Sequence record: PQ464590.1
Reading direction: 5' to 3' (one strand)
Length of the DNA: 64,000 nt
Both the position numbers and the translations under genes were made by a program. Of the stretch, positions 9,282 through 38,755 are shown in pieces (position 1 is the stretch's first letter; every line of letters starts with the position of its first letter). The notes below the pieces were generated by a model. It was not told where the DNA came from. It did no database searches and saw only the letters and a program-made list of their open reading frames with translations.

Positions 9282-9311
9282 ATTATATCACATTTTTTGC
9301 TACCATTTCAA
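9282..9311 (-). promoter_or_regulatory. Phage-class promoter (TTGAAA-18-TATAAT, with ATGTGA before the -10)
   Basis: tattatatcacattt at 9281; weakest upstream box of the class. Confidence 0.6.
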
Positions 9312-9833
9312 AAATTCGTTCACATCGAGAGAATATTTTATTGAATCCACCATATGAAGCCCAATCAGATACAAACAATAGCTCGCAACTGAACTTCCAC
9401 GGCCTAAGCCCCAAAAGATTTCATGCTCTTCCATATAGTCAACCAACCAAATCATACAACGTAATAGTTTAGTCATGTTGTAGCTCTCGTATAAACTCAA
9501 CTCGTACAGTACTCGTTCTCTTTCTACATCAGTACTGCACTTTTGAAGAAAGAATTCCTGTAAGTTGATTTTGTCATATACTGAATCATATCTCCACAAC
9601 TCATGATTCTGACTGTGGTCTATTTTATAATCCAGCATACGATGAGATAACCCGAATTTCTTACAGTTCTCATTGAACTTCAATCGTTCAGGTTCATCCA
9701 TTTCCATCAACTGCATGTACTGTATATCTTGACCGCAGTTCATGGCATATACTACTGCATTCAGGTTACAGTGAACATCACCATCCTGACTTATAAATCT
9801 GTTTCCTTGTACTTTCATTAGGTCGTTTCTCAT
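9300..9833 (-). CDS. DnaE (Pol III alpha, C-family)-like N-terminal fragment
   Basis: RVLYEL...WLVDYM...WGLGRGSSVASYCLYLIGLHMVDSIKYSLDVNEFLK aligns by eye with DnaE RL..EL...[35 protein letters not shown]. Confidence 0.8.
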   Translation of the reverse strand: MRNDLMKVQGNRFISQDGDVHCNLNAVVYAMNCGQDIQYMQLMEMDEPERLKFNENCKKFGLSHRMLDYKIDHSQNHELWRYDSVYDKINLQEFFLQKCSTDVERERVLYELSLYESYNMTKLLRCMIWLVDYMEEHEIFWGLGRGSSVASYCLYLIGLHMVDSIKYSLDVNEFLKW

Positions 9834-10086
9834 CCTCTTCAGATGCTAAGTAAGAATCAGAATCGAACACACAACTATCTTCATCACGCCAGCTTTCAGC
9901 TTCTTTACGTGAATGACGTAAGTAGTTCTCTTCCTCACAGGCTTGAAGTACCATATACATACCGTTAAGAATGTCAGATCCCATACCCGCAGCACGGGCA
10001 TGTGAAATCTTAGTACTCATATCTAAAATCTTTTGATTTAATTCCTTATCACTCATACCCTCTGGGCTGAAAAATGGATTGAACAT
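9778..10086 (-). CDS. Hypothetical protein
   Basis: 102-aa ORF with GGAGG SD. Confidence 0.65.
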   Translation of the reverse strand: MFNPFFSPEGMSDKELNQKILDMSTKISHARAAGMGSDILNGMYMVLQACEEENYLRHSRKEAESWRDEDSCVFDSDSYLASEEDEKRPNESTRKQIYKSGW

Positions 10087-10087
10087 G

Positions 10088-12484
10088 TTAACCTCCGATT
10101 CTACTCTGTTCTTTAATTTGAATTGTATAATTGTTCTTCACGTACTTGTTGTACTCTTGGAAAAAGTACTGGAATTCTACATATGTGATATCGAATTCTT
10201 CATTCACTAAGGTTTGGTGCTCGTTAGAACGTACCAATCTGTTATAGAACGCTTCGGCCTGACCAGGATTAAAGTAAGCAACTGGAATTACAGGCATGAA
10301 TTCAGCCTTAAGTCCATCTTCCAAGTACGGGTGGTTCATGTATCGAGGAACAGTGTCAATCATTTCTGATGACAGACCTGGAATCATAGGAACCGTTATA
10401 CCGCGATTTTGGAAGTCAGTAGGATCTGATAGTAAGTTAGTTACGTCTTCGCCAACAGCTTTATAAATGTTTTCACGTAATCCGAAGAATTCAGAAAGGA
10501 ATGCAGTGTCCTGCATCGTGTATGTGAACGGGTCCATAGAAACGGATACCGTAGTTCCTGCTGGGTGAATCTCCCTGTACAGAACATCATACAATACATT
10601 TCCGAGACTGTCAAGTGCTGAACGTATTTTATAATTACCCATTACAAAACCAAAAATACCATTAGGAACTGGTGCACCGTGTTCAGGATTAATCACATTA
10701 TCACGTAACGTCTTCTTCATTGCTGCAAGAGTTGTGTACGGATAAGTACTACTTACAAAGTTTTCTTTAAGTAAAATCCTAGGGGTTTTCTGCAATCCAT
10801 AGCGATCATCAACTCCACGATAGTAGTACTGATTTGCAAACTGTGAAGTACTGATAGTACTGAACCATTTACGCTCAAATGGCATACTTGGCTTAATATA
10901 AGCACTCAAAAAATTCTGACCGAACCCTCTAATAATTCTTAATTCAAAAGTACTAGTAATCGAAGCTCCAGATTTTTCCGTAGCTCTGACATCGAACTCA
11001 AGTTTTATCTCATCGTTCGTCGTAAAATCCTGTGCTCTAGCATATGCAGTACCAATCAACGTACCATCAGCAGCGAGGTCCAAATTATATTTTGTAATGT
11101 CATCACGAGATGAAGATGCTATTTCATACGTAACTAACGTACCAGTGGCTTGAATCTTTGGATATACGGTATGACCAAAATATTCACCAACGTGAATTGC
11201 ACCCAAATTCTTATCAGTGATGAAATCAATACCATCACCAGTACTTGCGTTTACAATCATTCTAAATGTACGTTCTTGACCGATAATCCCTGATCCCAAC
11301 GCTGCATTGTAATATCCTAAATCATTCCAGGCAGTACTGTCAAATACTGCCTTTTGAACTCCACTATCATAGACATCTTTAATAACGTACGGATATACTA
11401 AAGTATTTTTCAATTGATACAAGTGACCGGGAATTGGAGAACCATCAATATAAGAAATATCTTGAGGACATACCCACATTTGGTACGCCTTAAAACGTTT
11501 ACCAACATAAAATGCATCCTTCTCGGTTTTGTATAAATCAGTAGGGGCGATAATGCGAACTCTGAAATATGCATCGATTGGGTCAGATTCGTATAAAAGT
11601 GTACCAAGGAATTGTCCGTTGGAGTTGAATTTCAATCCAGAATTGATTTTGTTCCCAAGTTCATCAACAATAACAACTGGCATCTCTTCCGATTCAGGAG
11701 GCCACGTTGCAGTACTATCAGGTGTGATAGTTGTTCCTTTTCCTGTTCTATGAGTACTTGGTATCGAAGACATAGGCAAATCTAAAATACGATAATCAGG
11801 ATAGAATACACGATTTGAATCATCATCACTGGCGGCATCACCATCTATATATTTTCTACTTCTACCGAATGCTTGAACAAACGAACGACTGTTAGAACCG
11901 AAGTGCATTTCTGAAATACTATACATTTCGTCACGTACAATTAGTGATGGTGTCACCCAAACTTCAGTACTGTTATCATACGCAATAGTTGCTGTGTTAT
12001 TTCCTATTACCCCTGAACTTTCAACATTTGCTATTTGACCATCAATCAATGTTACTACGTTCATTTCGTTCAAAAAGAATTGTAGACTTTCTGGACCATC
12101 CCATACACCGTCAACATTACAATGAACTTTAATGAAATATATGTCTTTGGTTAGTGTTGTTAATTTGAATGATTTTTTTTGTAGTTTAACTTTATGTGTT
12201 CCATTAATTTTATTTGTACTACCATCATAACCGAGTGGTTTTAAATTATTAATGTCTTCACCAACCATGATCGTGAAATCTCGGTCTTCTAATGTCTCAC
12301 CAGTACCTTTAATTTGGTAAGTAAGTTCTAAGTACTGATCGTTAGTAATTTCATAAACATCTGGATCACTCACTTTATCCCTGTTAATGCTTATACGGAC
12401 ATAAGTGGTTCCACCTTCAGTAATAATATTCGTATCAGCCTTCAAATCCCAATGAGGTGTAAATTGTGCCATGTAAATCTCCAA
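10088..12484 (-). CDS. Large virion protein, probable baseplate/tail-associated (Ig-like segments)
   Basis: 798 aa, beta-rich, with segments like SGLKFNSNGQFLGT and LAADGTLIGT; TATAAATA late promoter at 12505-12512. Confidence 0.5.
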   Translation of the reverse strand: MEIYMAQFTPHWDLKADTNIITEGGTTYVRISINRDKVSDPDVYEITNDQYLELTYQIKGTGETLEDRDFTIMVGEDINNLKPLGYDGSTNKINGTHKVKLQKKSFKLTTLTKDIYFIKVHCNVDGVWDGPESLQFFLNEMNVVTLIDGQIANVESSGVIGNNTATIAYDNSTEVWVTPSLIVRDEMYSISEMHFGSNSRSFVQAFGRSRKYIDGDAASDDDSNRVFYPDYRILDLPMSSIPSTHRTGKGTTITPDSTATWPPESEEMPVVIVDELGNKINSGLKFNSNGQFLGTLLYESDPIDAYFRVRIIAPTDLYKTEKDAFYVGKRFKAYQMWVCPQDISYIDGSPIPGHLYQLKNTLVYPYVIKDVYDSGVQKAVFDSTAWNDLGYYNAALGSGIIGQERTFRMIVNASTGDGIDFITDKNLGAIHVGEYFGHTVYPKIQATGTLVTYEIASSSRDDITKYNLDLAADGTLIGTAYARAQDFTTNDEIKLEFDVRATEKSGASITSTFELRIIRGFGQNFLSAYIKPSMPFERKWFSTISTSQFANQYYYRGVDDRYGLQKTPRILLKENFVSSTYPYTTLAAMKKTLRDNVINPEHGAPVPNGIFGFVMGNYKIRSALDSLGNVLYDVLYREIHPAGTTVSVSMDPFTYTMQDTAFLSEFFGLRENIYKAVGEDVTNLLSDPTDFQNRGITVPMIPGLSSEMIDTVPRYMNHPYLEDGLKAEFMPVIPVAYFNPGQAEAFYNRLVRSNEHQTLVNEEFDITYVEFQYFFQEYNKYVKNNYTIQIKEQSRIGG

Positions 12485-12504
12485 AATGATTAAAAGCTAT
12501 GTGG

Positions 12505-12512
12505 TATTTATA
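12505..12512 (-). promoter_or_regulatory. T4-type late promoter TATAAATA
   Basis: Plus strand tatttata; exact T4 late consensus, just downstream of a terminator. Confidence 0.7.
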
Positions 12513-12517
12513 AGAAC

Positions 12518-12540
12518 AAAGGACGCTATATGCGTCCTTT
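12518..12540 (-). terminator. Terminator after topoisomerase genes
   Basis: aaaggacgc-tatat-gcgtccttt. Confidence 0.7.
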
Positions 12541-12544
12541 AATA

Positions 12545-13951
12545 TTAGTCTTCTTGTTTTGGAGAACAATCCATTTTACGAAGTTCTAGAAGTTCTTCTT
12601 TGTAAATTGCCCAAATATCAGCATGGTTCTCAAGTAGTGCAGAGTACTTATCCATTAGGTCAAGTGCTTCTTGGATTTCTTCCTGTACTTTAGCACGGTT
12701 CTCTATAGTCCAGCGATAAGACGGGTAGTTCACAATACTTTGGATATTGTCATCGGTAGCACCAATTGGTCCATTTAGAGAAGTTACAAACTCAACTAGC
12801 TCTGCACGGTTGTTGAAGCCTTTGATTTTACCAATCATATCTTTATCGAAACATTCCATGATAAGTGCTTTATAACGTACTTCAGCATCTGCATCACGTA
12901 GTTTCTTTTCATAGCGTTTTACGTAGTATTTGAAACGGAAGTGTACGAAGTCATGAATTAGTTCACGGACATCATTGTACGATTTTACTTTACCATTTTC
13001 ACCTAGTACGTTCAAGATTTCAGTAATCTTAGAACTTAGACCGAAATACTCAATAACATCATTTTCTGTCCATTTGGCGGAAGTACCACGAGGTAGTTTT
13101 ACGGTAATCTGAATACTATCAGTACTGTCATCGTCATAATCACGAATCTCACCTTTATCCTGCATCTCGATTAGTTTCTCAACAAATGCGTCACGCTTTT
13201 TGCGTGGAGGTAGTCCAGTAATTAGTACAGTACTAGCATCAATTACTTCTGCTTTACCGAAGAACTGATATTTACCATGATCATACTTCTCAACACGTTC
13301 TGATGCACCAACAGATACATAATACGGTGTCATTTCTTGTAGTTCTTCACCATCAATAACACGAATACAGTTATCAATGATTTCTTCTAGTTTATAAGGC
13401 AGAATACTACTCTTATAACCAACTGACATACTATCGTTACCAAATAGAGATAGTGGGATAATTGGCAGGAAGTGAGTAGGTTCCATAGTAGTTCCGTCAT
13501 AGTTTTCTTGCATAGGAACAACGTCCATATCACGCAGTACTAGGGCTTCTGTTACTTTGGTCTTCTTCACATATGTATAACGTGCACTTGCTGGCATGGT
13601 ATTCACTTGAGTACCGAAACCACCACGCTTGCCAATTAGTGGGTAATTGTTAGCAACTGGGCTTGCTAGTTGCTGAAGTGTACCTGCTGCTGATGCATCA
13701 CCATGAAGGTAGATACCGTCACTGATCATACGACCTGCACAAGACACTGTTTTGATTTCACCCGATACTTTGCTTAGGGTGAAGATAGCTTTACGCTGGG
13801 AGTTCTTTAGTCCGTCAATCCCAGGGATCGCACGGTCCAATGTACTCATTGCATATTCCAGTGAAGACTGGTTGATATAGTCTGAACTGTTATAGTCCAG
13901 TAGTGTTAGTGTTGCATTGTCAATACTTTGATTCTTTGTTGCTTTAGCCAT
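12545..13951 (-). CDS. 52: DNA topoisomerase II, DNA breakage-reunion subunit (gp52/GyrA-like)
   Basis: RAIPGIDGLKNSQRK, YLHGDAS, catalytic ASARYT, EPTHFLPIIP. Confidence 0.93.
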   Translation of the reverse strand: MAKATKNQSIDNATLTLLDYNSSDYINQSSLEYAMSTLDRAIPGIDGLKNSQRKAIFTLSKVSGEIKTVSCAGRMISDGIYLHGDASAAGTLQQLASPVANNYPLIGKRGGFGTQVNTMPASARYTYVKKTKVTEALVLRDMDVVPMQENYDGTTMEPTHFLPIIPLSLFGNDSMSVGYKSSILPYKLEEIIDNCIRVIDGEELQEMTPYYVSVGASERVEKYDHGKYQFFGKAEVIDASTVLITGLPPRKKRDAFVEKLIEMQDKGEIRDYDDDSTDSIQITVKLPRGTSAKWTENDVIEYFGLSSKITEILNVLGENGKVKSYNDVRELIHDFVHFRFKYYVKRYEKKLRDADAEVRYKALIMECFDKDMIGKIKGFNNRAELVEFVTSLNGPIGATDDNIQSIVNYPSYRWTIENRAKVQEEIQEALDLMDKYSALLENHADIWAIYKEELLELRKMDCSPKQED

Positions 13952-14003
13952 TCCATTGCCTCTTTGATATTATGGGGAACTTCATGTCCCCCCTTGTACT
14001 AAT

Positions 14004-15965
14004 TTATTCGCCCATCCAATCTTTACGGTCGTCAGCACGGGTCTTGTTGAAGATTAGATCTAGGGTTGGTCCCAAGCGTCCATCATCGATAATTGCCACT
14101 GCAACGCCGTCCGTGAGTGCATCACGGAAATTAGTTTTCTCTAGCGTACCTAGCCCTTTAGCACGGGTAGCTTTCCATCCCTTCCACTCTTCAGGAACGA
14201 ACTCATGTACGTTATGACCGTAGAAATAACGAGTTTCTTTTCCTTTCTCCAGAATGATAAATGGAGTTTTGAAAACATACACGAATGGATTTTCTGGATC
14301 TGCAAATAGTTCAGGCCAGAACTTGAATAGGAAGTTACATACTAGTGCACCAATGTTTTTACCATCCTCATCTTCGTCCGCACAGATGTATAGTTTACCG
14401 TAGTTCATTTCAGAACGTTCAGCTTTTACACCAGGAATGAGGTTCAACGATGCCATTATATCATGTAGTGAGTCAGAAGCCATCAAATCTTTGGTCTTCT
14501 CTGTGCCACTAACGTTCATGATTTTACCACGAAGTGGTAGAATACCATGCACTTTAGAGTCACGTGCCGCACTCATGTTACTAATTGCGGAATCACCTTC
14601 TGCGATTAGAAGAATACATTTTGAACGATCCGAACCAGTTGCATCCGATAGCTTAGCCACTTTACCTTTCAGTAGTTTCTTAGCCATTCGACGATCTTCT
14701 TCAGCATCTTTCTTGTTTGTACGTTCAGCACAACGTGTAAAGATTTCGTCAATCCACTCTTTGTTTTTCTTCACTAGTTCTTCAAACCATTCAGTACTCA
14801 TAGCTTGCTGTACTGGACGAATGACGTTCTCGTTAGTAAGCTTAGTTTTAGTCTGTGAGTTGAAAGATGGTGCGTTCATCTTAGTGATGTTATAAATTAG
14901 CAAACCTTCTTCAATATCAGAACGGTTCGGCTTTAGCTTACGTTTTTTAGATTCTTTCTCTAGGGCTGAAGCAACACCAAGGGAGAAGAACTTCTTGAAC
15001 GTATCTAAGTGTGTACCACCTTCAAGTGCTGGAGCATTATTCACTAGTCCATGCATGTGGAAGTTAGTACTTTGATTCTGTACTGCATTTGGAACAATAT
15101 AGAAAGTACTGTCAAAACCAGTGTCTTGTACTGATAAAGACATTAGCTTATTAGTTTCGAATAAACCTTTCTCTACGCTCTTCGCCTGAATACGTTCGTC
15201 ATTCAGGAAGATTTTGTAAGTTGGGTTAGCTGCACTGATTTCCTTCAAGATACTATAAATTAGTTCTGTAGGCAAAGTTAGTGTAGGGAACACAACAGGA
15301 CTTAGCTGGAACCTGATAGTAGTGCCTGATTTTTCAGCTTTCACTTTTCGGATGGACGGTTCATGAATCTGAAGGTCAGGGAACATTGCTGTACCTTCAC
15401 TGAACTTCTGATTGAATTTGTACATCCCATCGTAAGCATCGTTACTTGCCGCTGTCTTGTATGGACGACCAGTACGGTGAATTTCTAGTTCAGCACTAGA
15501 ACTTACAATCATTACCACTGAACCACCTAGACCGTTCATACCGATTACGTTTTCACGTTCATCGTCATTGAAGTTACGACCAGTTTTCATTTCAGTCATA
15601 ACCATAGTACATAGGTTCTTTTGTGTGTCCGGCACGTAGTCGATTGGAATACCACGACCATTATCGGAGATCTCAACTTTCATTTCATTCTCGTCGAACA
15701 AAACTCGCAGTACTGGATCTTTTACGCCAGCCTTTACAAATTCGTCAAGAGAGTTATCAAGAACTTCACGCACAGCAGTTAGAAGAGCAGGAACCCAACG
15801 TACATTAGTTACTTGGAAGCCTTTCTTACCAAAGATTAGAGCGATTTGTTCATGGAGGGAACGTGAGCCTAAGTACATTTCTGTACGGATACGGGCGTGT
15901 TCATATTCAGTTAGCTGCTGAATTCCATGTTCAGCCATCACTGAGGATTGCGGTTTCTTTGCCAT
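14004..15965 (-). CDS. 39: DNA topoisomerase II ATPase/TOPRIM subunit (fused gp39+gp60/GyrB-like)
   Basis: EHARIRTEMYLGS, EVLDNSLDE, DNGRGIP, GMNGLG, AEGDSA, PLRGKIMN, KGLG. Start reassigned to MAKKPQ (15965), which has a SD and lies downstream of the promoter. Confidence 0.93.
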   Translation of the reverse strand: MAKKPQSSVMAEHGIQQLTEYEHARIRTEMYLGSRSLHEQIALIFGKKGFQVTNVRWVPALLTAVREVLDNSLDEFVKAGVKDPVLRVLFDENEMKVEISDNGRGIPIDYVPDTQKNLCTMVMTEMKTGRNFNDDERENVIGMNGLGGSVVMIVSSSAELEIHRTGRPYKTAASNDAYDGMYKFNQKFSEGTAMFPDLQIHEPSIRKVKAEKSGTTIRFQLSPVVFPTLTLPTELIYSILKEISAANPTYKIFLNDERIQAKSVEKGLFETNKLMSLSVQDTGFDSTFYIVPNAVQNQSTNFHMHGLVNNAPALEGGTHLDTFKKFFSLGVASALEKESKKRKLKPNRSDIEEGLLIYNITKMNAPSFNSQTKTKLTNENVIRPVQQAMSTEWFEELVKKNKEWIDEIFTRCAERTNKKDAEEDRRMAKKLLKGKVAKLSDATGSDRSKCILLIAEGDSAISNMSAARDSKVHGILPLRGKIMNVSGTEKTKDLMASDSLHDIMASLNLIPGVKAERSEMNYGKLYICADEDEDGKNIGALVCNFLFKFWPELFADPENPFVYVFKTPFIILEKGKETRYFYGHNVHEFVPEEWKGWKATRAKGLGTLEKTNFRDALTDGVAVAIIDDGRLGPTLDLIFNKTRADDRKDWMGE

Positions 15966-15999
15966 TATAGTTTCCTTTCTATTGTCTCTTAGCATAGTT

Positions 16000-16029
16000 A
16001 TTATATCACATTTTGTTTCTTTGTCTCAA
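16000..16029 (-). promoter_or_regulatory. Phage-class promoter TTGAGA-18-TATAAT
   Basis: attata 16000-16005, tctcaa 16024-16029. Confidence 0.75.
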
Positions 16030-16066
16030 AAAAATATCGGAAACGCGTTAACGCCTCCGATATTAT

Positions 16067-17658
<1,592 letters not shown>

Positions 17659-17665
17659 AGATTAC

Positions 17666-18202: not shown

Positions 18203-18212
18203 AGAATCCCTC

Positions 18213-19796: not shown

Positions 19797-21142
19797 TAGT
19801 ACCTTCCATTCTTCCGTAGCATAACACTATAGCGTGGGCGAGTCATTGCTGTGTACATGATTCTACACTTAGTGTCATTATTGGAAATGCGGTCAATGAA
19901 GTCGGTGTCGAACCAAATATTATCAAATGTACTACCCTGTGACTTGTGTGCAGTGGTAGCGTAAGGATAGTTGATAACATTGATCTTGTTCTTGATGACG
20001 TAGTAATCTTGCCAGCCGTAAGGTTTTTGAGTCAATGGATTCATTTCCTTTTTCTCAATCTTACGTACTAGTGATTCTAAATGATCATCTAGTGCCATAC
20101 GACTATATGGACCAACGCCTAGGATGTAGTTTCCGTTCGGTAGTTTGAACTGCCAACACTGTATACCTAAGAATTCTTCTTGGCGAACTTCTGGGCATTG
20201 AATCATTTGCTGTACTGTATAACTACAGTTTTCAGTTACGGTTTCAAACACAATTGGTTCACCCTGAACGAACTCAGTCTCTTGGTGCTGTGGGAATACT
20301 TCATTACGAATGAACATGTTTGCGTAGTTTACACGGTAGTTTGTGTACGCAATAATCTTGTTCTCTTGTACGAAGTCAAAGATCTTACGAGAAGAACCTA
20401 AGTTCTCACAGATGAATTCTTTGTACACATCAAGGAATAGATTCTCATCATAGATTGGTGTAATTGTTTCAAAACCATCCAGACGATTCAATATGTCCAT
20501 TGGGTTTTTATTAGTACCGATGCATTCACGAATCTGGGTTGCTACGTTGATAATTGGATTATCCATAGCTTGACGTAGTACTTCAGTCAATTCGTATTTC
20601 ACAGGAACGTTGAAAGTTGGGCTTAGTTTAGTCTCTCCTATTGTTCCTTCAGCCTCTACCGGAGGTAGCTGGCATGAATCACCAACAAATAGAATAGCAC
20701 GGCGAACTCGATGAATCTGACTTATGATATGGTTGTACATTTCTTCAGAGATCATAGAACACTCGTCTACAATCAAAATGTCAACATATGAGTTACTGTT
20801 TTTAGACTGTGCATCATGTTTCAGTACTTGATGGTTCTTTTCATAAACTAATTTCAATCCTAAGAAGGAGTGAATAGTACTGACCTGTGCATCTTCTTTT
20901 GTTAGCCCCACGTTGTTGATTAGCATGTTGCGAATAACAGCATTCGCTTTGTGCGTTGGGGATGTTACTGCGATATTATAACCCTTGTGAAGATTTTTTA
21001 CAATCTCCGATACGAGGGTAGTTTTACCAGTACCAGCATAACCTACAAGAACACATTCGGAACGCCCTGGGTAGTTATGTACACGGTCGATAAAATTGTC
21101 AAAAATATCTTGTTGCTTGTCCGTAAGCGTAATATTACTCAT
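19796..21142 (-). CDS. dda: Dda-like SF1B DNA helicase
   Basis: GYAGTGKTT, SPTHKA, IVDECSM, VGDSCQLPPV, EVLRQA, TAHKSQGSTF, YTAMTR. Confidence 0.9.
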   Translation of the reverse strand: MSNITLTDKQQDIFDNFIDRVHNYPGRSECVLVGYAGTGKTTLVSEIVKNLHKGYNIAVTSPTHKANAVIRNMLINNVGLTKEDAQVSTIHSFLGLKLVYEKNHQVLKHDAQSKNSNSYVDILIVDECSMISEEMYNHIISQIHRVRRAILFVGDSCQLPPVEAEGTIGETKLSPTFNVPVKYELTEVLRQAMDNPIINVATQIRECIGTNKNPMDILNRLDGFETITPIYDENLFLDVYKEFICENLGSSRKIFDFVQENKIIAYTNYRVNYANMFIRNEVFPQHQETEFVQGEPIVFETVTENCSYTVQQMIQCPEVRQEEFLGIQCWQFKLPNGNYILGVGPYSRMALDDHLESLVRKIEKKEMNPLTQKPYGWQDYYVIKNKINVINYPYATTAHKSQGSTFDNIWFDTDFIDRISNNDTKCRIMYTAMTRPRYSVMLRKNGRY

Positions 21143-30264: not shown

Positions 30265-30294
30265 ATTATATCACATTATGTAAATTTATCTCAT
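30265..30294 (-). promoter_or_regulatory. Phage-class promoter ATGAGA-18-TATAAT
   Basis: attata 30265-30270, tctcat 30289-30294. Confidence 0.7.
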
Positions 30295-30624
30295 TTATTT
30301 TCTTAGACTGCTGGAGGCAGCTTTTGAGGCCATATCAGAAACAATCTCTTCCGAGCTTTCTTCAGGGGCATCAGTACTGGTATCTCCTTCAGCACCAAAC
30401 GTTACTATATCACTATTTACATCCTGCACAAATGGTAATGAGCCAAGAATATCAACCATAACATTGTACGGGACATCTATATTAGTTCTCTTCTTGATTT
30501 CATTGATTAGTGCTTGAAGTTTCACTTCCTCACGACCAGTTGCAACCAATGATAGTGCAGTTGTCATGATCATTGAACGGATGTTTTTGGATGGTGCGTC
30601 TTCAGTTAGATCACTGAATCTCAT
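30295..30624 (-). CDS. Hypothetical protein (probable head-associated)
   Basis: 109 aa; begins MRFSDLTED. Confidence 0.6.
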   Translation of the reverse strand: MRFSDLTEDAPSKNIRSMIMTTALSLVATGREEVKLQALINEIKKRTNIDVPYNVMVDILGSLPFVQDVNSDIVTFGAEGDTSTDAPEESSEEIVSDMASKAASSSLRK

Positions 30625-30633
30625 ACCTTATCC

Positions 30634-31260
30634 TTATTTGGCTGGGCCAATTACACGTTTGATTTTATTTTGATTCTCGGTTAGCCAAGTTTTCATTTCT
30701 TCTTTTGATTCGAAGAACTTACGACCACGTTTACCCGCAGTACTCTCTACTTCAATACCAATACGTTTTGGTTGTGCAGATTCTTTCATAGCACGTTCAA
30801 TTGGGGTAGGTTCACCACCAGTGACATCATCCAGTTCTGCATCAGCTTCGAAATCAAAAGTTGGAGTATCAACATCTAGAGATACATCTTCCTGACCAAT
30901 GTCACTGATACCAGGAGCACTTGTAATGTCACCAGTTAGTTTTAGAGTTTCAGTACTGATCTTGTCTTTTACGTCCATTAGAGTTTTTACTGCATGTTCA
31001 AGTAGACCACTAATGTTGTTACGGAAACTTTCAGCAGACTCTAGGCCATGTTCAGCTTTGATACGGTCAAGTAGTGGTCCAAGTACGTCAACACCCATGT
31101 TGTTGATCACTTCTGCTTGACGTTGTAGTTTATCAACGATTTCGCCTTTAACCGCTAGAACGATTTCAGCTTTCTCGATGTTTGATTCTTGAAGTACAAT
31201 GTAACCTAGTGCTTCAGCACGGTTAGCAGACTCCATCATCTTAGAAAATTGTTTAGACAT
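30634..31260 (-). CDS. Probable prohead core/scaffold-type protein
   Basis: 208 aa; acidic linker; several x-x-ES motifs; TAAATA at 31294-31299. Confidence 0.45.
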   Translation of the reverse strand: MSKQFSKMMESANRAEALGYIVLQESNIEKAEIVLAVKGEIVDKLQRQAEVINNMGVDVLGPLLDRIKAEHGLESAESFRNNISGLLEHAVKTLMDVKDKISTETLKLTGDITSAPGISDIGQEDVSLDVDTPTFDFEADAELDDVTGGEPTPIERAMKESAQPKRIGIEVESTAGKRGRKFFESKEEMKTWLTENQNKIKRVIGPAK

Positions 31261-31292
31261 TATGTTATTTCCTTATATAGTCAATTCCTATT

Positions 31293-32045
31293 TTATTTAG
31301 TTATGTAACCTTCATCAACTAAGAATGTGATAACACGTTCTTTCAGCTTCTGGGCTTCTTGCTTCTTCTGAGCAATGATAGTATCTAACTCTTGAGCTAC
31401 ATCATACTTAGATTCTTTCAGTACTGCATGGCGTTTTTTGACACTCTTAAGTGCTTCCATAACAACTGCACTGTACTGAATGCTAGAACTGATAATTCCC
31501 AGTACTTTGATGTCAGAAAAATTCCGACCCTCGTTCAATAGGTTCACTATTGTCTGGGCAGCTTCAAACATCAACATGCCATCCATTAGTACTTGCCCAC
31601 TATGGTTGGATTTGACGCTATAAACTTTTGTATTCTTTGTACCCTCTAATGTACCTTCTACCAATGACCAATTGGTTTTTGGTTGTGAGTACTGTGGGGC
31701 AGAAATTGGTTGTGGATTGGGATTGTAATATGAAGTGTCAGGCTCTTCAAATACATATTCGCCTGGAATTTGTGCGTAATGATTCGCTAAGTTTTCACCC
31801 GCTCGCCAATCATCTTCATATTCATAAAGTTCATTGTGGTTGTTCATAGTACCTCTTGGTGCTTGGGGTGCATCTTCTGGATTCAAAAGATTTCCATACG
31901 CTAGGCCAACCTCATTTAGTCCTTCTAATAGTTTTCTGGTTTCATCATAATTCTGCTGGGCTGCAACGGGATCGGCAGTTCCGTCCTCGATATCATTCAA
32001 TGTACCCAGTAGACTTTCCATGAAATCTGATTCTGAATTACGCAT
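31293..32045 (-). CDS. Hypothetical protein (probable head-associated)
   Basis: 250-aa ORF in the late cluster. Confidence 0.6.
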   Translation of the reverse strand: MRNSESDFMESLLGTLNDIEDGTADPVAAQQNYDETRKLLEGLNEVGLAYGNLLNPEDAPQAPRGTMNNHNELYEYEDDWRAGENLANHYAQIPGEYVFEEPDTSYYNPNPQPISAPQYSQPKTNWSLVEGTLEGTKNTKVYSVKSNHSGQVLMDGMLMFEAAQTIVNLLNEGRNFSDIKVLGIISSSIQYSAVVMEALKSVKKRHAVLKESKYDVAQELDTIIAQKKQEAQKLKERVITFLVDEGYITK

Positions 32046-32256
32046 TTTTACTCCTTATCGGTACATAGTATTCTTCACCATCTTCTTCATGGATATTTAG
32101 TACTCCACGAGAAACAAGTTTGTCGGCTACTTCACGATAATATTCTTGAATTCCAAGCACTGGAACTTTACCACGTGCTTGAATTTTCTTCAGTACTGCG
32201 TACTCTTCATTAGAAACCATTACAGAATGACCAAATTCACTTTTAGTCATTCTCAT
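32038..32256 (-). CDS. Hypothetical protein
   Basis: 72 aa; overlaps its neighbour. Confidence 0.6.
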   Translation of the reverse strand: MRMTKSEFGHSVMVSNEEYAVLKKIQARGKVPVLGIQEYYREVADKLVSRGVLNIHEEDGEEYYVPIRSKNA

Positions 32257-32258
32257 TA

Positions 32259-33239
32259 TTAGCGACCTCGGATCTTAGAACAGTTGTCAATAATTTGTGC
32301 AATGATATCATTCTCGGCATCCATAGATGAATTACCAAGTGGGCTTTCGTCACCATGTACGTTATCATCAGCTTCAATATGACTGATAGCTTGAATAATC
32401 TCACCAATGCCAGGCTCAGTGTGAGTCAATGGAGAAGGACCGCCTGAAGTCGGCATTTGCTGTCCTGGTCCCATTAGCTCTTGGTTCTTCTGGGCTGGAT
32501 TGTAATCCTCTGCCATATTAACCTGACCTTGTTGGTTGATCGGATTCACGTCGTCTAGACCATATACACTAAGTTGGTTTTGCTTTTGTGGGTCTTTAGT
32601 TACAACTAATGTCTGTTGTGGGGTTGGACCAGGATCGACACCGACTACTGGAGCTACATCGTTAGTTCCTTGTTGCGACCCTGGAACAGTTACTTGCATT
32701 GCATTATTGCCAGAGTTCCGTTGTAACTCTGCTTGTTTCATCTTAGCTTGAGTTTGCGGATTCACTTGTTGCTGCTGTTCCTGATTATTTGCATTAGCAA
32801 TAGTGTTTGCAGTGAGTTGAGATTTTACATCTTCTTTTATCTTTGACTCTAAGAACATTTTTACATTTTCTTCATTAGCGACATCATAAGCAAGAGTTTT
32901 CATTTCAGCTAATGATAAGTGCTCATTAGTACTGAATGCTGAAGGTTCATGCATTTTATAAAATGTCTCTAAGTCAGTAAATGCTAGTGAGTTGATGAAA
33001 TTTAATCCATACGACTCAACCAGAATGTCACCATAAAAGTACTTATAGCTTTCGCTAAGACGAGCTTTGTATTTTTGTAAAATTTGCATAATGGTTCGGT
33101 TGTCAGAATTATCCATCGCTTGATTTATTTCGATGAAATCACCAGAATCCATTTCATTGACTGCAACTGAGCAGTCCATATCTAATCCATTTGCGTCAGC
33201 GAACACTTGAAGCTGCTGGGCGGTTTCTTGTATATCCAT
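32259..33239 (-). CDS. Gln/Pro-rich probable internal head protein
   Basis: 326 aa; TAAATA at 33279-33284; GGAG SD. Confidence 0.55.
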   Translation of the reverse strand: MDIQETAQQLQVFADANGLDMDCSVAVNEMDSGDFIEINQAMDNSDNRTIMQILQKYKARLSESYKYFYGDILVESYGLNFINSLAFTDLETFYKMHEPSAFSTNEHLSLAEMKTLAYDVANEENVKMFLESKIKEDVKSQLTANTIANANNQEQQQQVNPQTQAKMKQAELQRNSGNNAMQVTVPGSQQGTNDVAPVVGVDPGPTPQQTLVVTKDPQKQNQLSVYGLDDVNPINQQGQVNMAEDYNPAQKNQELMGPGQQMPTSGGPSPLTHTEPGIGEIIQAISHIEADDNVHGDESPLGNSSMDAENDIIAQIIDNCSKIRGR

Positions 33240-33284
33240 TTAGTATCTCCAAAAGAAAAACCTTTTCTTATTCTCGATTATTTA

Positions 33285-33683
33285 TCAAGTACAAGAAAAG
33301 GTTTGTTTACTAATACTAATATTACGAGAACTGTTCACAGAGTTGAACTTAGTAATACGAGTACCGTTCACAACTGTTGGAAGAACTAATGGAATACCAT
33401 TCACTTGAATTGTTACATCCATAGGTATAGCGAATTTGAAAGTACTGATTATGCATTTTCCCCAGCTAGAAGGTAAGTCATAGAATTCACTATTGTTTCC
33501 TTTTGACAAGTCAACTTCGTTTCTAACTACACTTACCATCATAGGGTAATCAAACATCATAACAGCTTCAACGATTCTCGACAAGTTCATAGCCCCTGTA
33601 AATTTATCGTCTTTTATTGCTGGTGTACTTCCGTCACCTATATCTACAACCGTATGAATAGTGTAGAATGTGTACGGTTTCAT
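33285..33683 (-). CDS. Hypothetical protein
   Basis: 132-aa ORF. Confidence 0.65.
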   Translation of the reverse strand: MKPYTFYTIHTVVDIGDGSTPAIKDDKFTGAMNLSRIVEAVMMFDYPMMVSVVRNEVDLSKGNNSEFYDLPSSWGKCIISTFKFAIPMDVTIQVNGIPLVLPTVVNGTRITKFNSVNSSRNISISKQTFSCT

Positions 33684-33838
33684 TTCTTATCCTTTTTGTC
33701 CATTTTCACTTCCTTGTAACCAAAGAAATTACTCGGTGGAAGTCTTTTTAGTAACGGGTAGTGTAGCCCACCAGATACTGATGCAATAGCTCCTGCACTG
33801 GTAGCTCCTGCTGATGCGTTTTCTTTTAGCTTCTTCAT
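33680..33838 (-). CDS. Small protein with ENASAGATSAG motif
   Basis: Start reassigned to MKKLKEN (33838), 52 aa. Confidence 0.55.
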   Translation of the reverse strand: MKKLKENASAGATSAGAIASVSGGLHYPLLKRLPPSNFFGYKEVKMDKKDKK

Positions 33839-33839
33839 A

Positions 33840-34103
33840 TTATCCCCTCGGATTTCGTTTCTCATCAAGGGCTATATTTTCTAGCCCTTTCTGGAATTTA
33901 CGGTAATCTCGATTCTTGATACTGAGGAATAAACGTTTTTTCAAATCTTCCGCATCGGAAGTACTGAAATCTGTATCTATACTTTCGAGTAGGTTGATTA
34001 TAGAATTGATAGCATGGTCAGCCCTATTGCTAAAGCTTTGTAAATCCTCCTTCACTGGAGTATAGTTTATAATACTATCAAGAAGATTATTTTTACCGGA
34101 CAT
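33840..34103 (-). CDS. Hypothetical protein
   Basis: 87-aa ORF after the helicase. Confidence 0.6.
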   Translation of the reverse strand: MSGKNNLLDSIINYTPVKEDLQSFSNRADHAINSIINLLESIDTDFSTSDAEDLKKRLFLSIKNRDYRKFQKGLENIALDEKRNPRG

Positions 34104-34105
34104 TG

Positions 34106-35638
34106 TTATTTCCTATTCTGCAAGAATTTCCTCATATTATCAACACGACCGTTACTAGGTGTATTTGAAGTATTTAGTCCTGAAGAATCGGAAGTATCTT
34201 GAATAGTTCCGGTAGCAACGTCAGCATCGTCTTGTGCTGCCTGTGCCGCTGTATGGAGAGGTTTTACCGTACTTTGAAGAGAACTATGCAACATCTGAAT
34301 TGTGCTCGGTGCGGACGGCATAGACGTTACATTCCCACCACCAATCTTCACAGTCCCAGAGTGCTTGAATCCAGAATCTAATTCCATCTGCTGTATAGTC
34401 ATGCTGTGGTCAAGAACACGTAGTGAATCCATATTATAGGACATACGTAACCTAGAACCTACTGCTGAACTGTTACGAGTTTTCTGGAAGTCGAACCACA
34501 TCTCACCAACTTCTTTCTTCGCTTCAATGAAAATTACGTTATCCGCTGTATAGATCTTAGAAATACCACCAGCAATTTGTGATGAGGATTTCTTGTCTTC
34601 GCCCTTTACCCCGTCACGGTTGAACTGACACGCGGTGAATACCGTAATGTCCATTTTCATTGCAAGTGCACGAAGTTCTTCTGAAACGAACTTATCCTTT
34701 ACGAATGCGTTAGATTTGTCTTGAGCCGTACAACGATCTGAAGTCAATAGGTCAAGGTAGTCAACGCAAACATAATCTAGCTTTATACCAGTTTTGATTT
34801 GTAGTTCACGAAGATAACTTTCAATGTCGTTAGTAGTACTGACAGATTCTGGCAAACGGTGAATACGTAACATACCGTTCGTCTTCTCTTCAATTTTTAC
34901 CTGTAAAGTAGTATTATCAATATCAGTTTTGACCTTCTTCTGGTCAGTGTCGATTAGCATACCATAGATACGTACAGCAACAAGTTCTTTTGCTAGTTCT
35001 AATGAAATATATGCACCGTTCAACCCTGCTTTAGAGAAGTTCACAGCTAAGTTTTGTAGTACTACTGATTTACCACCACCGGAGGCAGCGGCAAAGATTT
35101 CCAATTCTTGACGACCAAAGCCACCAAACAATTTATAATCTAATGTATCCCATCCACTCTTGAAAGAACCCTGCATGTCAGCTAGTGATTTGATGACTGT
35201 TTCTGGGTCTTCATAAATGTCCAGTCCAAGTTCGTTCTGAACTGTTACTAACATCGCTTCACGAATTAGTTCTTCGATTCCACCATACTTCTTCTGGTGT
35301 ACTAATTCCATACCTTTCTGTACTGCTAATGCTAGTGCTTTATGGCGACAAAACTCACCCACACTATCCAGTACTGCTTGGTGGTGCAGTTCTGTAAGAT
35401 CTATCTTATCATACTCAAAACCACCCTTGTATTTGATATCAACAAGGGGAGGTATATCGCTGTACTGTCGAGCATATTCATGAACATACTCAATACTACC
35501 ATGATATTCCTTATCAAAATATTCTGGCCTCAAAATGTTTTTACAACGTACATACACCTCTGGATTACTGAAGATTTGAGATAGTAAGTACATTTGATAT
35601 TGAATGCCATATTGTTTTACGTCCGTGTTACTTGCCAT
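34106..35638 (-). CDS. 41: Replicative DnaB-family helicase (gp41-like)
   Basis: GWDTLD..LFGG, AASGGGKS, YISLEL, VDYLDL, ELRALA, TACQFNR, KTRN. Confidence 0.93.
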   Translation of the reverse strand: MASNTDVKQYGIQYQMYLLSQIFSNPEVYVRCKNILRPEYFDKEYHGSIEYVHEYARQYSDIPPLVDIKYKGGFEYDKIDLTELHHQAVLDSVGEFCRHKALALAVQKGMELVHQKKYGGIEELIREAMLVTVQNELGLDIYEDPETVIKSLADMQGSFKSGWDTLDYKLFGGFGRQELEIFAAASGGGKSVVLQNLAVNFSKAGLNGAYISLELAKELVAVRIYGMLIDTDQKKVKTDIDNTTLQVKIEEKTNGMLRIHRLPESVSTTNDIESYLRELQIKTGIKLDYVCVDYLDLLTSDRCTAQDKSNAFVKDKFVSEELRALAMKMDITVFTACQFNRDGVKGEDKKSSSQIAGGISKIYTADNVIFIEAKKEVGEMWFDFQKTRNSSAVGSRLRMSYNMDSLRVLDHSMTIQQMELDSGFKHSGTVKIGGGNVTSMPSAPSTIQMLHSSLQSTVKPLHTAAQAAQDDADVATGTIQDTSDSSGLNTSNTPSNGRVDNMRKFLQNRK

Positions 35639-35649
35639 GTTCTAAATCC

Positions 35650-36699
35650 TCAAATCCATTTGTCTGTTTGTACTCGTATGTCAAAAGGTTCATCAACAAT
35701 ACTGGCATGTATTAGTTGAATGCAGAATAGTCTGCCATATTTTGCACACGCTTCATCAAAATCTTTTACGTGCCTAATTCCATTAGAATCACGTACTGCA
35801 CCGAAATCTGGGAATGATACACTAAACCCTAGTTCGATTGCTTGCTCTATTGTCACAAGTCCATCTTTATCTCTGTCAGGAACTATGACAATTCTCTTAC
35901 CTCTTTCCTGTGCTGCTTTTAGTACTTCAATTTGTGCTGCACTTAGGAAATAGTTATTGGCTGATACTCCACCCATTAGAGCCGCATCAATTGGACCCTC
36001 CGCCACCAGAATCGTTCTGATGTTCGGATCGTTCAGTAAATCAAAATTATACAACAGTGAAGTACTGACTTGGTTTACGTATCGGAAATTGCTATCCACA
36101 TCTTTGTGTCGAGCAGTGTAACCAATAATTTGTCCATTCATATAATAAGGAATAATGAAACGATCATACATCCTATTATCTTTAGCTGGACTCCAGTACA
36201 GTTCTAAGTCAAGTAAGTACTGATTACGTTCATTGACCGCATTCAATACACTCCAGAATTGTTCTGGGACGTTTTCGGAGTTCACCCACTCCAGAAATGA
36301 TTTCGTACCAGGAGGAAACTCACGTTTGGTTATACGTTGATATAATCGTTGTGCTGCTGTTTCTTCCGATGCGAACTCTCCACTCTCCACCATCTCTTTC
36401 ACATAGAATTGGATTTCGGTGAGTGCTTTTTCGGATGCCCCAAAATAAGAGAGCAAAGACATCATATCTTTGCTCATAAATTTTCCAGGACTCCAAACTG
36501 TCTTAAGGTGACAGTTGTAGCAGTTATATACTACTGAACCTTCGCTAGTGAACATGTGATTACCACGATGACGTACATCGGGACGTGATTGACCACGATA
36601 AACACATGCAGGGCAGTTATAATTCTTCCATACCCCAATCGCTGGGGCTGGATCGTTCATAATTTCTGCCATTATAATCTGTACCGGATTCATATTCAA
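35650..36699 (-). CDS. 61: DNA primase (Zn finger + TOPRIM; gp61-like)
   Basis: CPAC...CYNC Zn finger; IIPY...IIGYTAR; VAEGPIDA; PDRDKDG; KDFDE. Confidence 0.88.
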   Translation of the reverse strand: MNMNPVQIIMAEIMNDPAPAIGVWKNYNCPACVYRGQSRPDVRHRGNHMFTSEGSVVYNCYNCHLKTVWSPGKFMSKDMMSLLSYFGASEKALTEIQFYVKEMVESGEFASEETAAQRLYQRITKREFPPGTKSFLEWVNSENVPEQFWSVLNAVNERNQYLLDLELYWSPAKDNRMYDRFIIPYYMNGQIIGYTARHKDVDSNFRYVNQVSTSLLYNFDLLNDPNIRTILVAEGPIDAALMGGVSANNYFLSAAQIEVLKAAQERGKRIVIVPDRDKDGLVTIEQAIELGFSVSFPDFGAVRDSNGIRHVKDFDEACAKYGRLFCIQLIHASIVDEPFDIRVQTDKWI

Positions 36700-36722
36700 T
36701 ATCCTTATGTTTCGTATCTACG

Positions 36723-36752
36723 ATTATATCACATTTTTAGGTTCTATCTCAC
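36723..36752 (-). promoter_or_regulatory. Phage-class promoter GTGAGA-18-TATAAT
   Basis: attata 36723-36728, tctcac 36747-36752. Confidence 0.7.
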
Positions 36753-37724
36753 TTATCTGCGAATTAAAATCTTAGGCATAGTTAGTAGTGGTTCGTAAAG
36801 TTTAACTACTTCGTTTGGTGGATAATTTCTAACCACTGGTGGAATAGCACATACTACTCGAAGCCACATGAAGTTACCTTTGAAGTTGAATGGCTGTATA
36901 CCATCAAGTGTTAGAGGAACTCCATTTGTATCGAAACCACTTTCAATATATTCTTTACCGTCTAGTTTTATAATGAACCATTTATAATTTTCAGAATCGA
37001 CTGGGGAGTTATTTGCTAAACAACCTTGTAATTGAACTCGCCCAATAAAGTTCTTGAAATAAAATGCGATAGTACTTAATCCTTCTACTAACCCGTATTG
37101 ACAACCTGCACGTAGTGCTGAACTGTGCATAACATCAAAGTCACCTTTAATGCCATTCGCAATCGGCTCACGCTCTGGGTGATCAACTGGCAACCATGAA
37201 GCATTACGATCATCACTGATTTCTTCGGAGGGAACAAATATAGGAGATGCAGTATCTTTTACAATTAGTTCAGCCGATGCTTCATAGTCTAATCCAGTGT
37301 ACAAGTATTCAGTTGGTTCTATTAATGAACCATCCATTGTTACCTTTATAATGCTCCAGCGATATTTGGACCCTGGACTTAGATCCTGAATTACTCCAGC
37401 AGGAATCATACAACCATAATATACTTTCTTGGAATTTCCTAATGATTGTCGTGCTTGTCCAGATTCAGATACCCATGATGGTTGTACTTTTTCTAAAGTT
37501 GTATCGTAGATTCTTGTGTTATTACGTGCATCAAAGATGCTCAGTACTAAGTACTGATTGTCTTTCAAAAGAGTGTACTTACCATCGGCATTATGTACAG
37601 TGAAAGACAGTGTGTTGTTAGCTCCACGATAAATGACAAGATTCTCATTAGTATATGGCATGTTAAAATTGCCTAATGAAACCTCGTTATTCCACGGATA
37701 CATGTATACGCCATGATGTGCCAT
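36753..37724 (-). CDS. Probable virion structural protein
   Basis: Start reassigned to MAHHGV (37724); beta-rich; TAAATA at 37761-37766. Confidence 0.55.
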   Translation of the reverse strand: MAHHGVYMYPWNNEVSLGNFNMPYTNENLVIYRGANNTLSFTVHNADGKYTLLKDNQYLVLSIFDARNNTRIYDTTLEKVQPSWVSESGQARQSLGNSKKVYYGCMIPAGVIQDLSPGSKYRWSIIKVTMDGSLIEPTEYLYTGLDYEASAELIVKDTASPIFVPSEEISDDRNASWLPVDHPEREPIANGIKGDFDVMHSSALRAGCQYGLVEGLSTIAFYFKNFIGRVQLQGCLANNSPVDSENYKWFIIKLDGKEYIESGFDTNGVPLTLDGIQPFNFKGNFMWLRVVCAIPPVVRNYPPNEVVKLYEPLLTMPKILIRR

Positions 37725-37776
37725 TTTATTCCTCATAAATACTTTGTATTAATTATATAATATTTATGGAAGTGCT

Positions 37777-38130
37777 ATGAACAAACATAAAACTTATCCC
37801 TATGTTACTGTTATAGAACATGATGGGAGTATGTATTATGGCATCATTAAAATTAAAAGTAAGCAGTACTGTACATTGTACTGCTTCCATTTAATGGATG
37901 AGAGCCATCAGGAAGAGTTACTAGACTTAGCATATGCTTGGTGGTGTCAAAGTAATCGTACCATACCAATTTGTCTCTTCTTTAGAGAAGAAATGGAACA
38001 GTACGAAGATTACACCAAACGCTTTAACACAGATACAGTTAATTTCGTATCTGGCCCAGTTATATCACTTAGTGACTTACCCACTAAACGGATCAAAAGA
38101 AGAAATGTAGCCCTCAAGAAGAGGAAATAA
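37777..38130 (+). CDS. Hypothetical protein (plus strand, late promoter)
   Basis: 117 aa; TAAATA at 37736-37741; fills the gap between divergent and convergent neighbours. Confidence 0.65.
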   Translation: MNKHKTYPYVTVIEHDGSMYYGIIKIKSKQYCTLYCFHLMDESHQEELLDLAYAWWCQSNRTIPICLFFREEMEQYEDYTKRFNTDTVNFVSGPVISLSDLPTKRIKRRNVALKKRK

Positions 38131-38755
38131 GATGTTCTACCAGTGCATTTAGTTGCACCACGATCATTAGACTATATGCGTAAGCATGAGGTTTCTTGAA
38201 GTATGGTAATTTCTTACCCTCGCCATTCAACTCTATAGTACTATAATCCCAAACTTCGGATTGTACTTCTGCCCAACTATTCATGCTTTGACACTTCCTT
38301 TTACCAGGACGAATCATTGCCAAGAACATTGCTAGTTCATCAATTGATGAAGGTTTCCATACGTGGAGTAATGTCAAGTGCTTTTTGATTTGTGAGAGTT
38401 CATTAACTATCTCAGGTTCAAGCAATAAACTCCAATCAGGCTCGCGTGCCATTAGCTCTTTCAGGTGATTACGATCACGAACATACATATAAGCCGATTG
38501 AGACAGAATATCAACCTTTTGGTATCCTAATCTTTCGGCTTCTTTATATGGAATACTCGCTAGTCCACTAACCGGATCAATTGGTATATTATCAAAATGT
38601 ACCCCACTATTATGTGCAATCAAACCATCTTCAGTAATTTTTTCAGTACTGCGAACACACGGTAATTGTGCAATAACTGACTTCGCATCTTTGAAGTCAA
38701 TGTCAATGTCAGTTCTGGCTTTCTTATAAGTTACTGTTGTAGTTGTTTTGTCCAT
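38114..38755 (-). CDS. DnaE (Pol III alpha)-like catalytic fragment
   Basis: RTDIDIDF (= PDFDVDF), HNSGVHF (= HAAGVVI), EAERLGYQKVDILS (= VEYAGLVKFDFLG), LAMIRPG (= ALFRPG), FKKPHAYAY (= FNKSHSAAY). Confidence 0.85.
   Translation of the reverse strand: MDKTTTTVTYKKARTDIDIDFKDAKSVIAQLPCVRSTEKITEDGLIAHNSGVHFDNIPIDPVSGLASIPYKEAERLGYQKVDILSQSAYMYVRDRNHLKELMAREPDWSLLLEPEIVNELSQIKKHLTLLHVWKPSSIDELAMFLAMIRPGKRKCQSMNSWAEVQSEVWDYSTIELNGEGKKLPYFKKPHAYAYSLMIVVQLNALVEHLISSS

Follow-up and report, generated by a model that had tools for sequence, protein, structure and literature searches.

A split minimal DNA polymerase III alpha in Erwinia phage Hallingskeid, its single-chain relatives and its gene neighbourhoods

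Can two genes that lie far apart on a phage genome each encode part of one polymerase active site, and what would such an enzyme be used for? This question is raised by a 64,000-nucleotide stretch of DNA (here referred to as the window, whose numbering is used throughout) that is identical to record positions 124001-188000 of Erwinia phage Hallingskeid (PQ464590.1), a 366-kb jumbo myovirus. The window is a long run of genes for replication, nucleotide metabolism and the virion, most of them on the minus strand. An original prediction, made from the letters of this stretch, held that two open reading frames (ORFs), 9300-9833 and 38114-38755, form a miniature C-family polymerase (DnaE) that is divided at the palm and lacks an intein. 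Both ORFs exist exactly as described, on the minus strand. They are separated by 28,280 bp and, in coding-strand order, the gene for the C-terminal part (the C half) lies upstream of the gene for the N-terminal part (the N half). Together, the two chains comprise 390 amino acids (aa).

The split gene pair of Hallingskeid is real, and it is already known, since the same split has been published and both genes are annotated. Iyer et al. 2021 (Viruses 13:63; PMC7824862, section 3.4.1, Fig. 3b) described a phage-specific minimal polymerase III (Pol III) alpha that accompanies a family B polymerase in group 2.2 jumbo phages. Those authors found the enzyme to be split between two genes that lie far apart, one for an N-terminal protein that binds nucleoside triphosphate (NTP) and one for a C-terminal protein that binds metal and template, and they suggested that it cooperates with the family B polymerase (PolB) in the synthesis of one strand or in repair. 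Hallingskeid was assigned to group 2.2 sensu Iyer et al. in its own genome paper (PMC11780129), both genes carry the label "DNA polymerase" in the GenBank record, and PHROGs 11127 and 11778 are labelled in the same way. The novelty that the original prediction implied therefore does not hold: the Hallingskeid pair is the same thing as the system of Iyer et al. and differs from it in nothing essential, with distant genes, a family B polymerase alongside and no other Pol III domains. A literature search found no later paper testing the split enzyme. What is new here are single-chain forms of the enzyme, the sets of conserved genes that surround either half, and the finding of both halves in a phage of 141 kb; further additions are the variable order and distance of the two genes and residue-level conservation counts.

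Two genes that divide a polymerase palm

The N half (9300-9833, minus strand) encodes a protein of 177 aa that matches phrog_11127 (E 2e-84). Residues 98-176 match the Pfam family DNA_pol3_alpha (PF07733) with an E value of 2.5e-8 and 34.3 bits, above the curated cut-off of 23.9, over profile positions 17-95 of 260, and this stretch is also hit by several NCBIfam DnaE models. In a phmmer comparison, residues 105-175 aligned without gaps with residues 384-454 of Thermus Pol III alpha, and a profile of the N-half family aligned with residues 322-392 of Escherichia coli alpha. The region includes a GRGSS motif (residues 144-148; 9390-9404, minus strand), which aligns with Thermus residues 423-427 and is the counterpart of the R-G-S loop with which Pol III alpha binds the triphosphate. 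Based on these alignments, residues ~98-176 are assigned to the first part of a C-family palm, with the phosphate-binding GRGSS loop. When the AlphaFold model of the N half was compared with the PDB using Foldseek, the ten best matches were all Pol III alpha structures, although the matches were weak. The protein ends with the GRGSS-containing stretch, the stop codon lying one residue past "...EFLK". We take the catalytic aspartates to be D401, D403 and D555 in E. coli and D463 and D465 in Thermus, following the established numbering of the 2006 structures; on this numbering the N-half alignment, which ends at Thermus residue 454, stops nine residues short of the first catalytic aspartate.

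The exact start of the N half is uncertain (9818-9833, minus strand). A second methionine (residue 6), five codons into the ORF, is the start in most relatives, and a well-spaced Shine-Dalgarno sequence is found at neither ATG. There is an overlap of 56 nucleotides between this gene and ORF 9778-10086, which lies upstream of it.

The C half (38114-38755, minus strand) encodes a protein of 213 aa that matches phrog_11778 (E 2e-103). It begins with 15 residues that are followed directly by DIDID (residues 16-20; 38696-38710, minus strand), which contains the first two catalytic aspartates and aligns with the DxDxD of Mycobacterium tuberculosis DnaE1 (residues 412-424). The third catalytic aspartate, together with a conserved lysine, lies in K-V-D (residues 80-82; 38510-38518, minus strand), as judged by the alignment to DnaE1 and by conservation. 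Two finger motifs follow: RPGK (residues 149-152; 38300-38311, minus strand), aligned with R-P-G of the DnaE1 fingers, and K-K-P-H-A-Y-A-Y (residues 187-194; 38174-38197, minus strand), aligned with DnaE1 residues 775-787. These correspondences come from a profile of 32 C-half sequences, whose best PDB match was M. tuberculosis DnaE1 in four collinear stretches covering the DxDxD (412-424), the K-x-D/R-P-G region (568-673) and the K-x-H-A...Y motif (764-787). The Pfam finger domain PF17657 was detected weakly in 16 of the 32 relatives, with a best E value of 0.003.

The AlphaFold model of the C half is confident, with a predicted local distance difference test (pLDDT) score of 93.2. In a Foldseek search of the PDB, all 13 top matches were C-family polymerases (Pol III alpha of Thermus, M. 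tuberculosis and E. coli and PolC of Geobacillus), with a probability of 0.99-1.0 for the best. Between D20 and K80 there are just 59 residues, modelled as one helix and a β-hairpin, compared with a spacing of ~150 residues, by the established numbering, between the second and third aspartates of E. coli alpha. Because so few residues separate the DxD and K-x-D strands, the thumb is absent. The ~130 residues beyond the third aspartate are modelled as a reduced finger domain, and the chain ends ~20 residues past the last finger motif. According to the model, then, the C half consists of palm strands carrying the three carboxylates, a β-hairpin at the position of the thumb and reduced fingers. 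Thus, the claim of a miniature C-family core of ~390 aa was borne out, for the N half by Pfam DNA_pol3_alpha and for the C half by the profile together with AlphaFold and Foldseek, and the division does fall within the palm, past the phosphate-binding G-S loop and ahead of the strand with the DxD.

Single-chain relatives and conservation of the split

When the whole library was searched with a C-half profile, 549 relatives were returned, nearly all of which are 180-220 aa long and two of which are longer. The single-chain relatives are rare and come from metagenomes. In the first of two single-chain forms, represented by P0311 (375 aa) and by P0390 and P0391 (376 aa, 78-81% identity), both halves are contained in one uninterrupted ORF; genes of this group were found on four contigs from different samples. 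Residues 4-176 of the N half align with P0311 residues 5-180 (E 5e-19) and residues 15-202 of the C half with P0311 residues 190-374 (E 2e-27). With nine residues between the two alignments, the halves fit end to end, as had been predicted. The Pfam and NCBIfam DnaE matches in P0311 continue without a break over the DxD and the junction. Behind the fused gene on contig L003 come members of the two families, one antisense and one of virion proteins, that also come after the C half in the window, and it is therefore the same locus in a related phage. The second single-chain form, P0377 (336 aa), is very divergent, with a metal motif of the type D-x-D-x-E. Its gene overlaps the end of a gene for a 552-aa PF03090 Rep-type "Replicase" (contig L015, 1516-4181, 8 kb), a setting outside the jumbo phages. 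Further fused forms were sought by scanning genome contigs with P0377, and viral contigs with both P0311 and alignment A3, but only split C halves were returned.

By alignment, the single-chain relatives tie the two halves together as one polymerase core, in the manner of Rosetta-stone evidence. In a rough neighbour-joining tree, which was midpoint-rooted and carries no support values, P0377 is on a deep branch, and the P0311 group falls within a clade that otherwise consists of split C halves, which hints at secondary fusion or repeated fission. For one split relative, P0396, the N half is absent within 10 kb. A further set of proteins of 460-550 aa (P0403, P0404 and PHROGs 13169 and 7513) contains a PHP domain and the first part of DNA_pol3_alpha, with the match ending near the same position in the palm; these may represent other DnaE genes that are split at or near the same point.

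Of the phage records in GenBank, 96 contain the C half and 107 a match to the N half. Twelve of the latter belong to the name groups Bacteriophage sp., Clostridium and Thomasclavelia, whose listed members are matches of the ordinary-DnaE type, leaving ~95. Otherwise, genus counts agree between the two halves (Escherichia 34/34, Pseudomonas 11/11, Erwinia 8/8 and Salmonella 8/8; Klebsiella 10/11). Both halves occur together in ~95 phage genomes, and every genome inspected had both, so that co-occurrence, which had been proposed as a check, is ~1:1. Both positions, and hence distance and strand, were worked out in 19 genomes. In all 19, the halves are separate, never adjacent, and on the same strand, at distances that range from 4 to 224 kb: about 4.2 kb in RsoM2USA, 10.8 kb in Slickus01, 14 kb in RAS14, 28-37 kb in Hallingskeid, 121Q, RaK2 and GAP32 relatives, 43 kb in PA5oct, 182 kb in Atu_ph07 and 224 kb in Phosso. 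The genome of Alishewanella phage Slickus01 (L012), in which the halves lie at 8533-9045 and 19884-20495 with the clamp loader between them and a primase-helicase after the C half, is just 141 kb long, and the split enzyme is therefore not confined to jumbo phages.

Two of the deposited sequences show irregularities. In Atu_ph07 (L011, 4805-5380), the annotated coding sequence of the C half (164 aa) begins downstream of the DxD, whereas the ORF and the tblastn match start earlier (191 aa), so that the start given in the record is probably too late. In Escherichia phage CMSTMSU (MH494197.1), the N half matches in two pieces and the C half in three, as would be expected if the deposited sequence contained errors or frame breaks.

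A split within a catalytic domain is odd a priori, and this oddity is the only point in favour of regarding it as an artefact or a peculiarity of one genome, produced by misassembly, a recent rearrangement or a sequencing frameshift, or of supposing that an intein or RNA splicing unites the halves. The distribution speaks against the former, as the same split point, with separate start and stop codons, recurs in ~95 phage genomes and, in the 19 compared, at widely differing distances. As for the latter, a Pfam search at E values up to 10 revealed no intein or Hint domain in either half, as the original prediction had it, and the junction offers no room for one, since the comparison with P0311 leaves just one unaligned residue after the N half and 14 before the C half. 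A scan of the window with Rfam found no intron or other RNA family, and no tRNA. Joining by an intein or by RNA splicing was rejected on these grounds, and we regard the probability of any explanation of this kind as negligible.

The residues expected at an active site are nearly invariant. In 111 N halves, with identities to the window protein down to 35%, GRGSS (G144, R145, G146, S147 and S148) is conserved without exception, and all 111 proteins stop right past the "...EF(L)K" position. Across 238 C halves with identities down to 28%, the catalytic aspartates are retained in 234 (D16), 234 (D18) and 237 (D82) sequences, and other residues in similar numbers (K80, 237; R149, 232; P150, 235; H190, 231). 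The prediction that GRGS and the three catalytic aspartates are kept thus agrees with the alignments to Thermus and DnaE1 and with the conservation in both sets of sequences. Such conservation, at overall identities as low as 28%, indicates purifying selection on the active site.

These counts also bear on whether the two proteins could be relics of a decayed DnaE that no longer cooperate or that serve as non-catalytic structural or regulatory parts of the replisome. About two thirds of a normal DnaE are gone, and a complete PolB would be able to do all synthesis, as such a decay would have it. However, hundreds of sequences show both ORFs uninterrupted and with little change in length, the halves co-occur and fused forms exist, and catalytic residues that are near-invariant at 28-35% overall identity would not be expected in a non-catalytic relic. 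Since the conservation data largely contradict it, we consider decay to be very improbable. The single-chain relatives, the ~1:1 co-occurrence and the invariant active-site residues strengthen the case that the halves work together.

Gene neighbourhoods of the two halves

The surroundings of both genes were compared by BLASTP of the window ORFs against the loci of PA5oct, Atu_ph07, RsoM2USA and RAS14. The N half belongs to a block that consists of the N half, a small ORF, a gp31/GroES-like protein (8566-8886, minus strand) and a gp44-like clamp loader (7267-8220, minus strand). The clamp loader is kept downstream of the N half in five lineages, and the gp31-like gene lies between the two in all lineages checked. 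The C half belongs to a second block, composed of a helicase, a 281-aa protein, a 235-aa protein and the C half. In the lineages compared there, the C half is followed by a small antisense gene, a virion protein, a primase and a DnaB-type helicase; by annotation and synteny, the last two are located in the window at 35650-36693 and 34106-35638, respectively, both on the minus strand. The blocks adjoin each other head to tail in RsoM2USA and RAS14, where the N half is the upstream one, an order that is also seen, by annotation, in Slickus01, and in the Hallingskeid-like phages the blocks are rearranged so that the C half is upstream. Because these conserved blocks recur across lineages, both halves are long-standing members of the replication module.

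Two neighbours of the C half are candidate partners of the mini polymerase. Homologues of the 235-aa protein (39134-39841, minus strand) immediately precede the C half in four lineages, as compared by BLASTP; in the window, a 137-aa ORF (38724-39137) intervenes. The N terminus of this protein contains a C2HC zinc-finger-like motif, with weak zinc-finger matches in Pfam and the PDB. The possibility that it is a sliding clamp was considered and is unsupported, the zinc-finger-like N terminus being its only, weak, feature. The 281-aa protein (39825-40670, minus strand; phrog_11758) is the conserved second upstream neighbour of the C half, and a PDB search gave no match for it.

On the opposite strand, a conserved gene for a 117-aa protein (37777-38130, plus strand; phrog_11637) shares 17 nucleotides with the 3' end of the C half. 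It occupies the same antisense position in PA5oct and Atu_ph07 and adjoins the single-chain gene on L003. The homologue in RsoM2USA is weaker (E 2e-5) and lies ~1.7 kb from the C half, without overlap.

The rest of the window adds to the picture of a T4-like replisome. A complete B-family DNA polymerase of 1002 aa with exonuclease and polymerase domains (56917-59925, minus strand), identified by a domain search, confirms the full B-family enzyme that had been noted earlier and is presumed to be the main replicase. In addition to the clamp loader, primase and DnaB-like helicase, UvsX/UvsY and a single-stranded DNA-binding protein (SSB) are present. A stand-alone DnaQ/RNase T-type exonuclease (43173-44015, minus strand), annotated as "DNA polymerase exonuclease subunit", heads the co-directional string of genes that ends in the C half. 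Since PolB has an exonuclease domain of its own, one might speculate that this protein is a partner of the mini polymerase.

Scans of the window for sigma-70-type promoters gave results no better than shuffled sequences, and the T4-late-like octamer TATAAATA occurs three times, which is not above chance, so that neither result pointed to a temporal class. Terminator-like hairpins at 12505-12541, 8540-8559, 44034-44055 and 37861-37886, all on the minus strand, bracket the gene strings that contain each half, and one TATAAATA comes after the hairpin at 12517-12541, ahead of the virion gene that lies before the N half. In PA5oct, mass spectrometry flagged neighbouring genes but neither half as virion proteins; the PA5oct omics paper makes no mention of either half, and the Sharanji paper only lists a "DnaE".

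Assembly, activity and possible role

We think it rather probable that a single minimal polymerase core of the C family is divided between the two genes, functions as a non-covalent pair and serves as an accessory, low-processivity DNA polymerase of the phage replisome; the original prediction, too, had marked heterodimer formation and function as inference. In such an enzyme, the N half would supply helices and the GRGSS loop that grips the triphosphate of the incoming nucleotide, the C half would supply the β-sheet with the three metal-binding carboxylates and the conserved lysine, and its cut-down fingers would contact the template and the nucleotide. The split falls within the minimal nucleotidyltransferase core, so that the loop that binds the triphosphate and the strand that binds the metal are on either side of it. 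As neither half has a complete active site, the two chains would have to associate for catalysis, and this association would be non-covalent, because an intein domain, spare residues at the junction and an intron-like RNA are all missing. The invariance of the active site argues for an active enzyme, and DNA synthesis is suggested by the finger motifs together with the setting among replication genes. An accessory, short-patch role, such as primer extension, gap filling or the synthesis of one strand, is more likely than that of the main replicase, because the PHP, thumb, clamp-binding and OB parts are missing and a complete PolB, a clamp loader, a primase and a helicase are present.

Several observations weigh against this interpretation. 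For the first 97 residues of the N half, no homologue was detectable in profile, Pfam or PDB searches, and this region is phage specific. The N-half model is of moderate quality (pLDDT 82.6), falling to 58 near the GRGSS loop. The search of each ORF with the DNA_pol3_alpha hidden Markov model, suggested along with the original prediction, exceeded the cut-off for the N half, but the single C-half sequence has no significant direct match in Pfam or among PDB sequences. For the C half, the profile match to DnaE1 is marginal (E 0.069), the match to PF17657 is under the cut-off (E 0.14), and the structural matches have Foldseek E values of only ~7e-3 and query-normalised TM scores of 0.41-0.49. 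To our knowledge, there is also no precedent for a polymerase that lacks a thumb and has reduced fingers, and DNA binding and templated synthesis are uncertain for this reason.

An alternative is that the pair is an active nucleotidyltransferase and not a templated DNA polymerase, and that it adds nucleotides without a template, acts on RNA or tRNA ends or makes or modifies a nucleotide for DNA modification or counter-defence. The core has the Pol-beta-type nucleotidyltransferase fold, the thumb, duplex-binding and clamp-binding regions are missing, and the N half begins with ~97 family-specific residues, all of which would be compatible with such an activity. On the other hand, the homology is specific to Pol III alpha, with near-invariant RPG and K-x-H-A...Y finger motifs, there is no match to defence-related or other nucleotidyltransferase families, and both genes are found among replication genes in five lineages. 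We consider this alternative unlikely. The role in anti-defence or DNA modification that the original prediction had also suggested receives no support from the replication setting, and a link to defence was rejected, as PADLOC gave no match at E values up to 1 for the N half, the C half or P0311.

How, then, does a two-chain polymerase core compare with known systems? The pair shares with bacterial DnaE and PolC (PDB 2hnh, 2hpi, 3e0d, 5lew and 3f2b) the Pol-beta-type palm, the G-S loop, the three carboxylates, the conserved lysine beside the third aspartate and the finger motifs. It differs in that DnaE and PolC are single chains of 1000-1200 aa, whereas the phage core has ~390 aa in two chains, with the G-S loop and the carboxylates on different chains, an unrelated N-terminal region of ~97 residues, and no PHP, thumb, clamp-binding, HhH or OB parts. 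The PHP domain had no match in either half at E values up to 10, and the C-terminal clamp-binding, HhH and OB regions are absent from either chain; an annotated "phosphoesterase" (54880-55500) was rejected as a separate PHP partner, as it is at best weakly calcineurin-like. The pair therefore fails most canonical DnaE features (PHP, thumb, C-terminal regions and a single chain) and keeps the catalytic core.

In cyanobacteria, DnaE-n and DnaE-c are encoded by two distant genes and carry split-intein halves, and trans-splicing yields a full-length DnaE. The phage system resembles this arrangement in that a DnaE arises from two distant genes, but the split lies within the palm, without an intein, and the product would stay as two chains. 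A precedent for an intein-free, non-covalent two-chain polymerase is provided by some T4-like phages, in which the family B polymerase gp43 is encoded as two cistrons, 43A and 43B, and by the split PolB of some archaea; unlike the phage pair, these enzymes belong to another polymerase family, come from adjacent genes and are otherwise full-sized. The DnaE of PolC-containing Firmicutes, a full-length enzyme, extends RNA primers. It offers a functional analogy only, in that a C-family enzyme helps, as second polymerase, a main replicase of another kind, and this analogy is based on the conserved position of the C half beside primase and helicase genes and on that of P0377 beside a PF03090 Rep-type protein.

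A bolder view of the split core would be that the pair and the single-chain relatives of 336-376 aa are working templated DNA polymerases, the smallest natural ones of the C family, reduced to a palm and mini-fingers, that they act as a second polymerase, for instance as a primer extender, in a PolB replisome and that the family has moved between split and single-chain states. We put this forward tentatively, as a possibility that falls somewhat short of being probable.

In summary, the present work confirms the split minimal Pol III alpha, and it adds single-chain relatives that act as a Rosetta stone, conserved neighbours and the presence of the enzyme outside jumbo phages. If the two-chain core is active, a module of ~390 residues, made up of a palm and mini-fingers, would be enough for C-family catalysis. 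This would bear on the evolution of Pol III and on why giant phages with a PolB-based replisome keep a second, bacterial-type polymerase, and a family that moves between split and single-chain states would provide a natural model of what a minimal or ancestral Pol III core needs.

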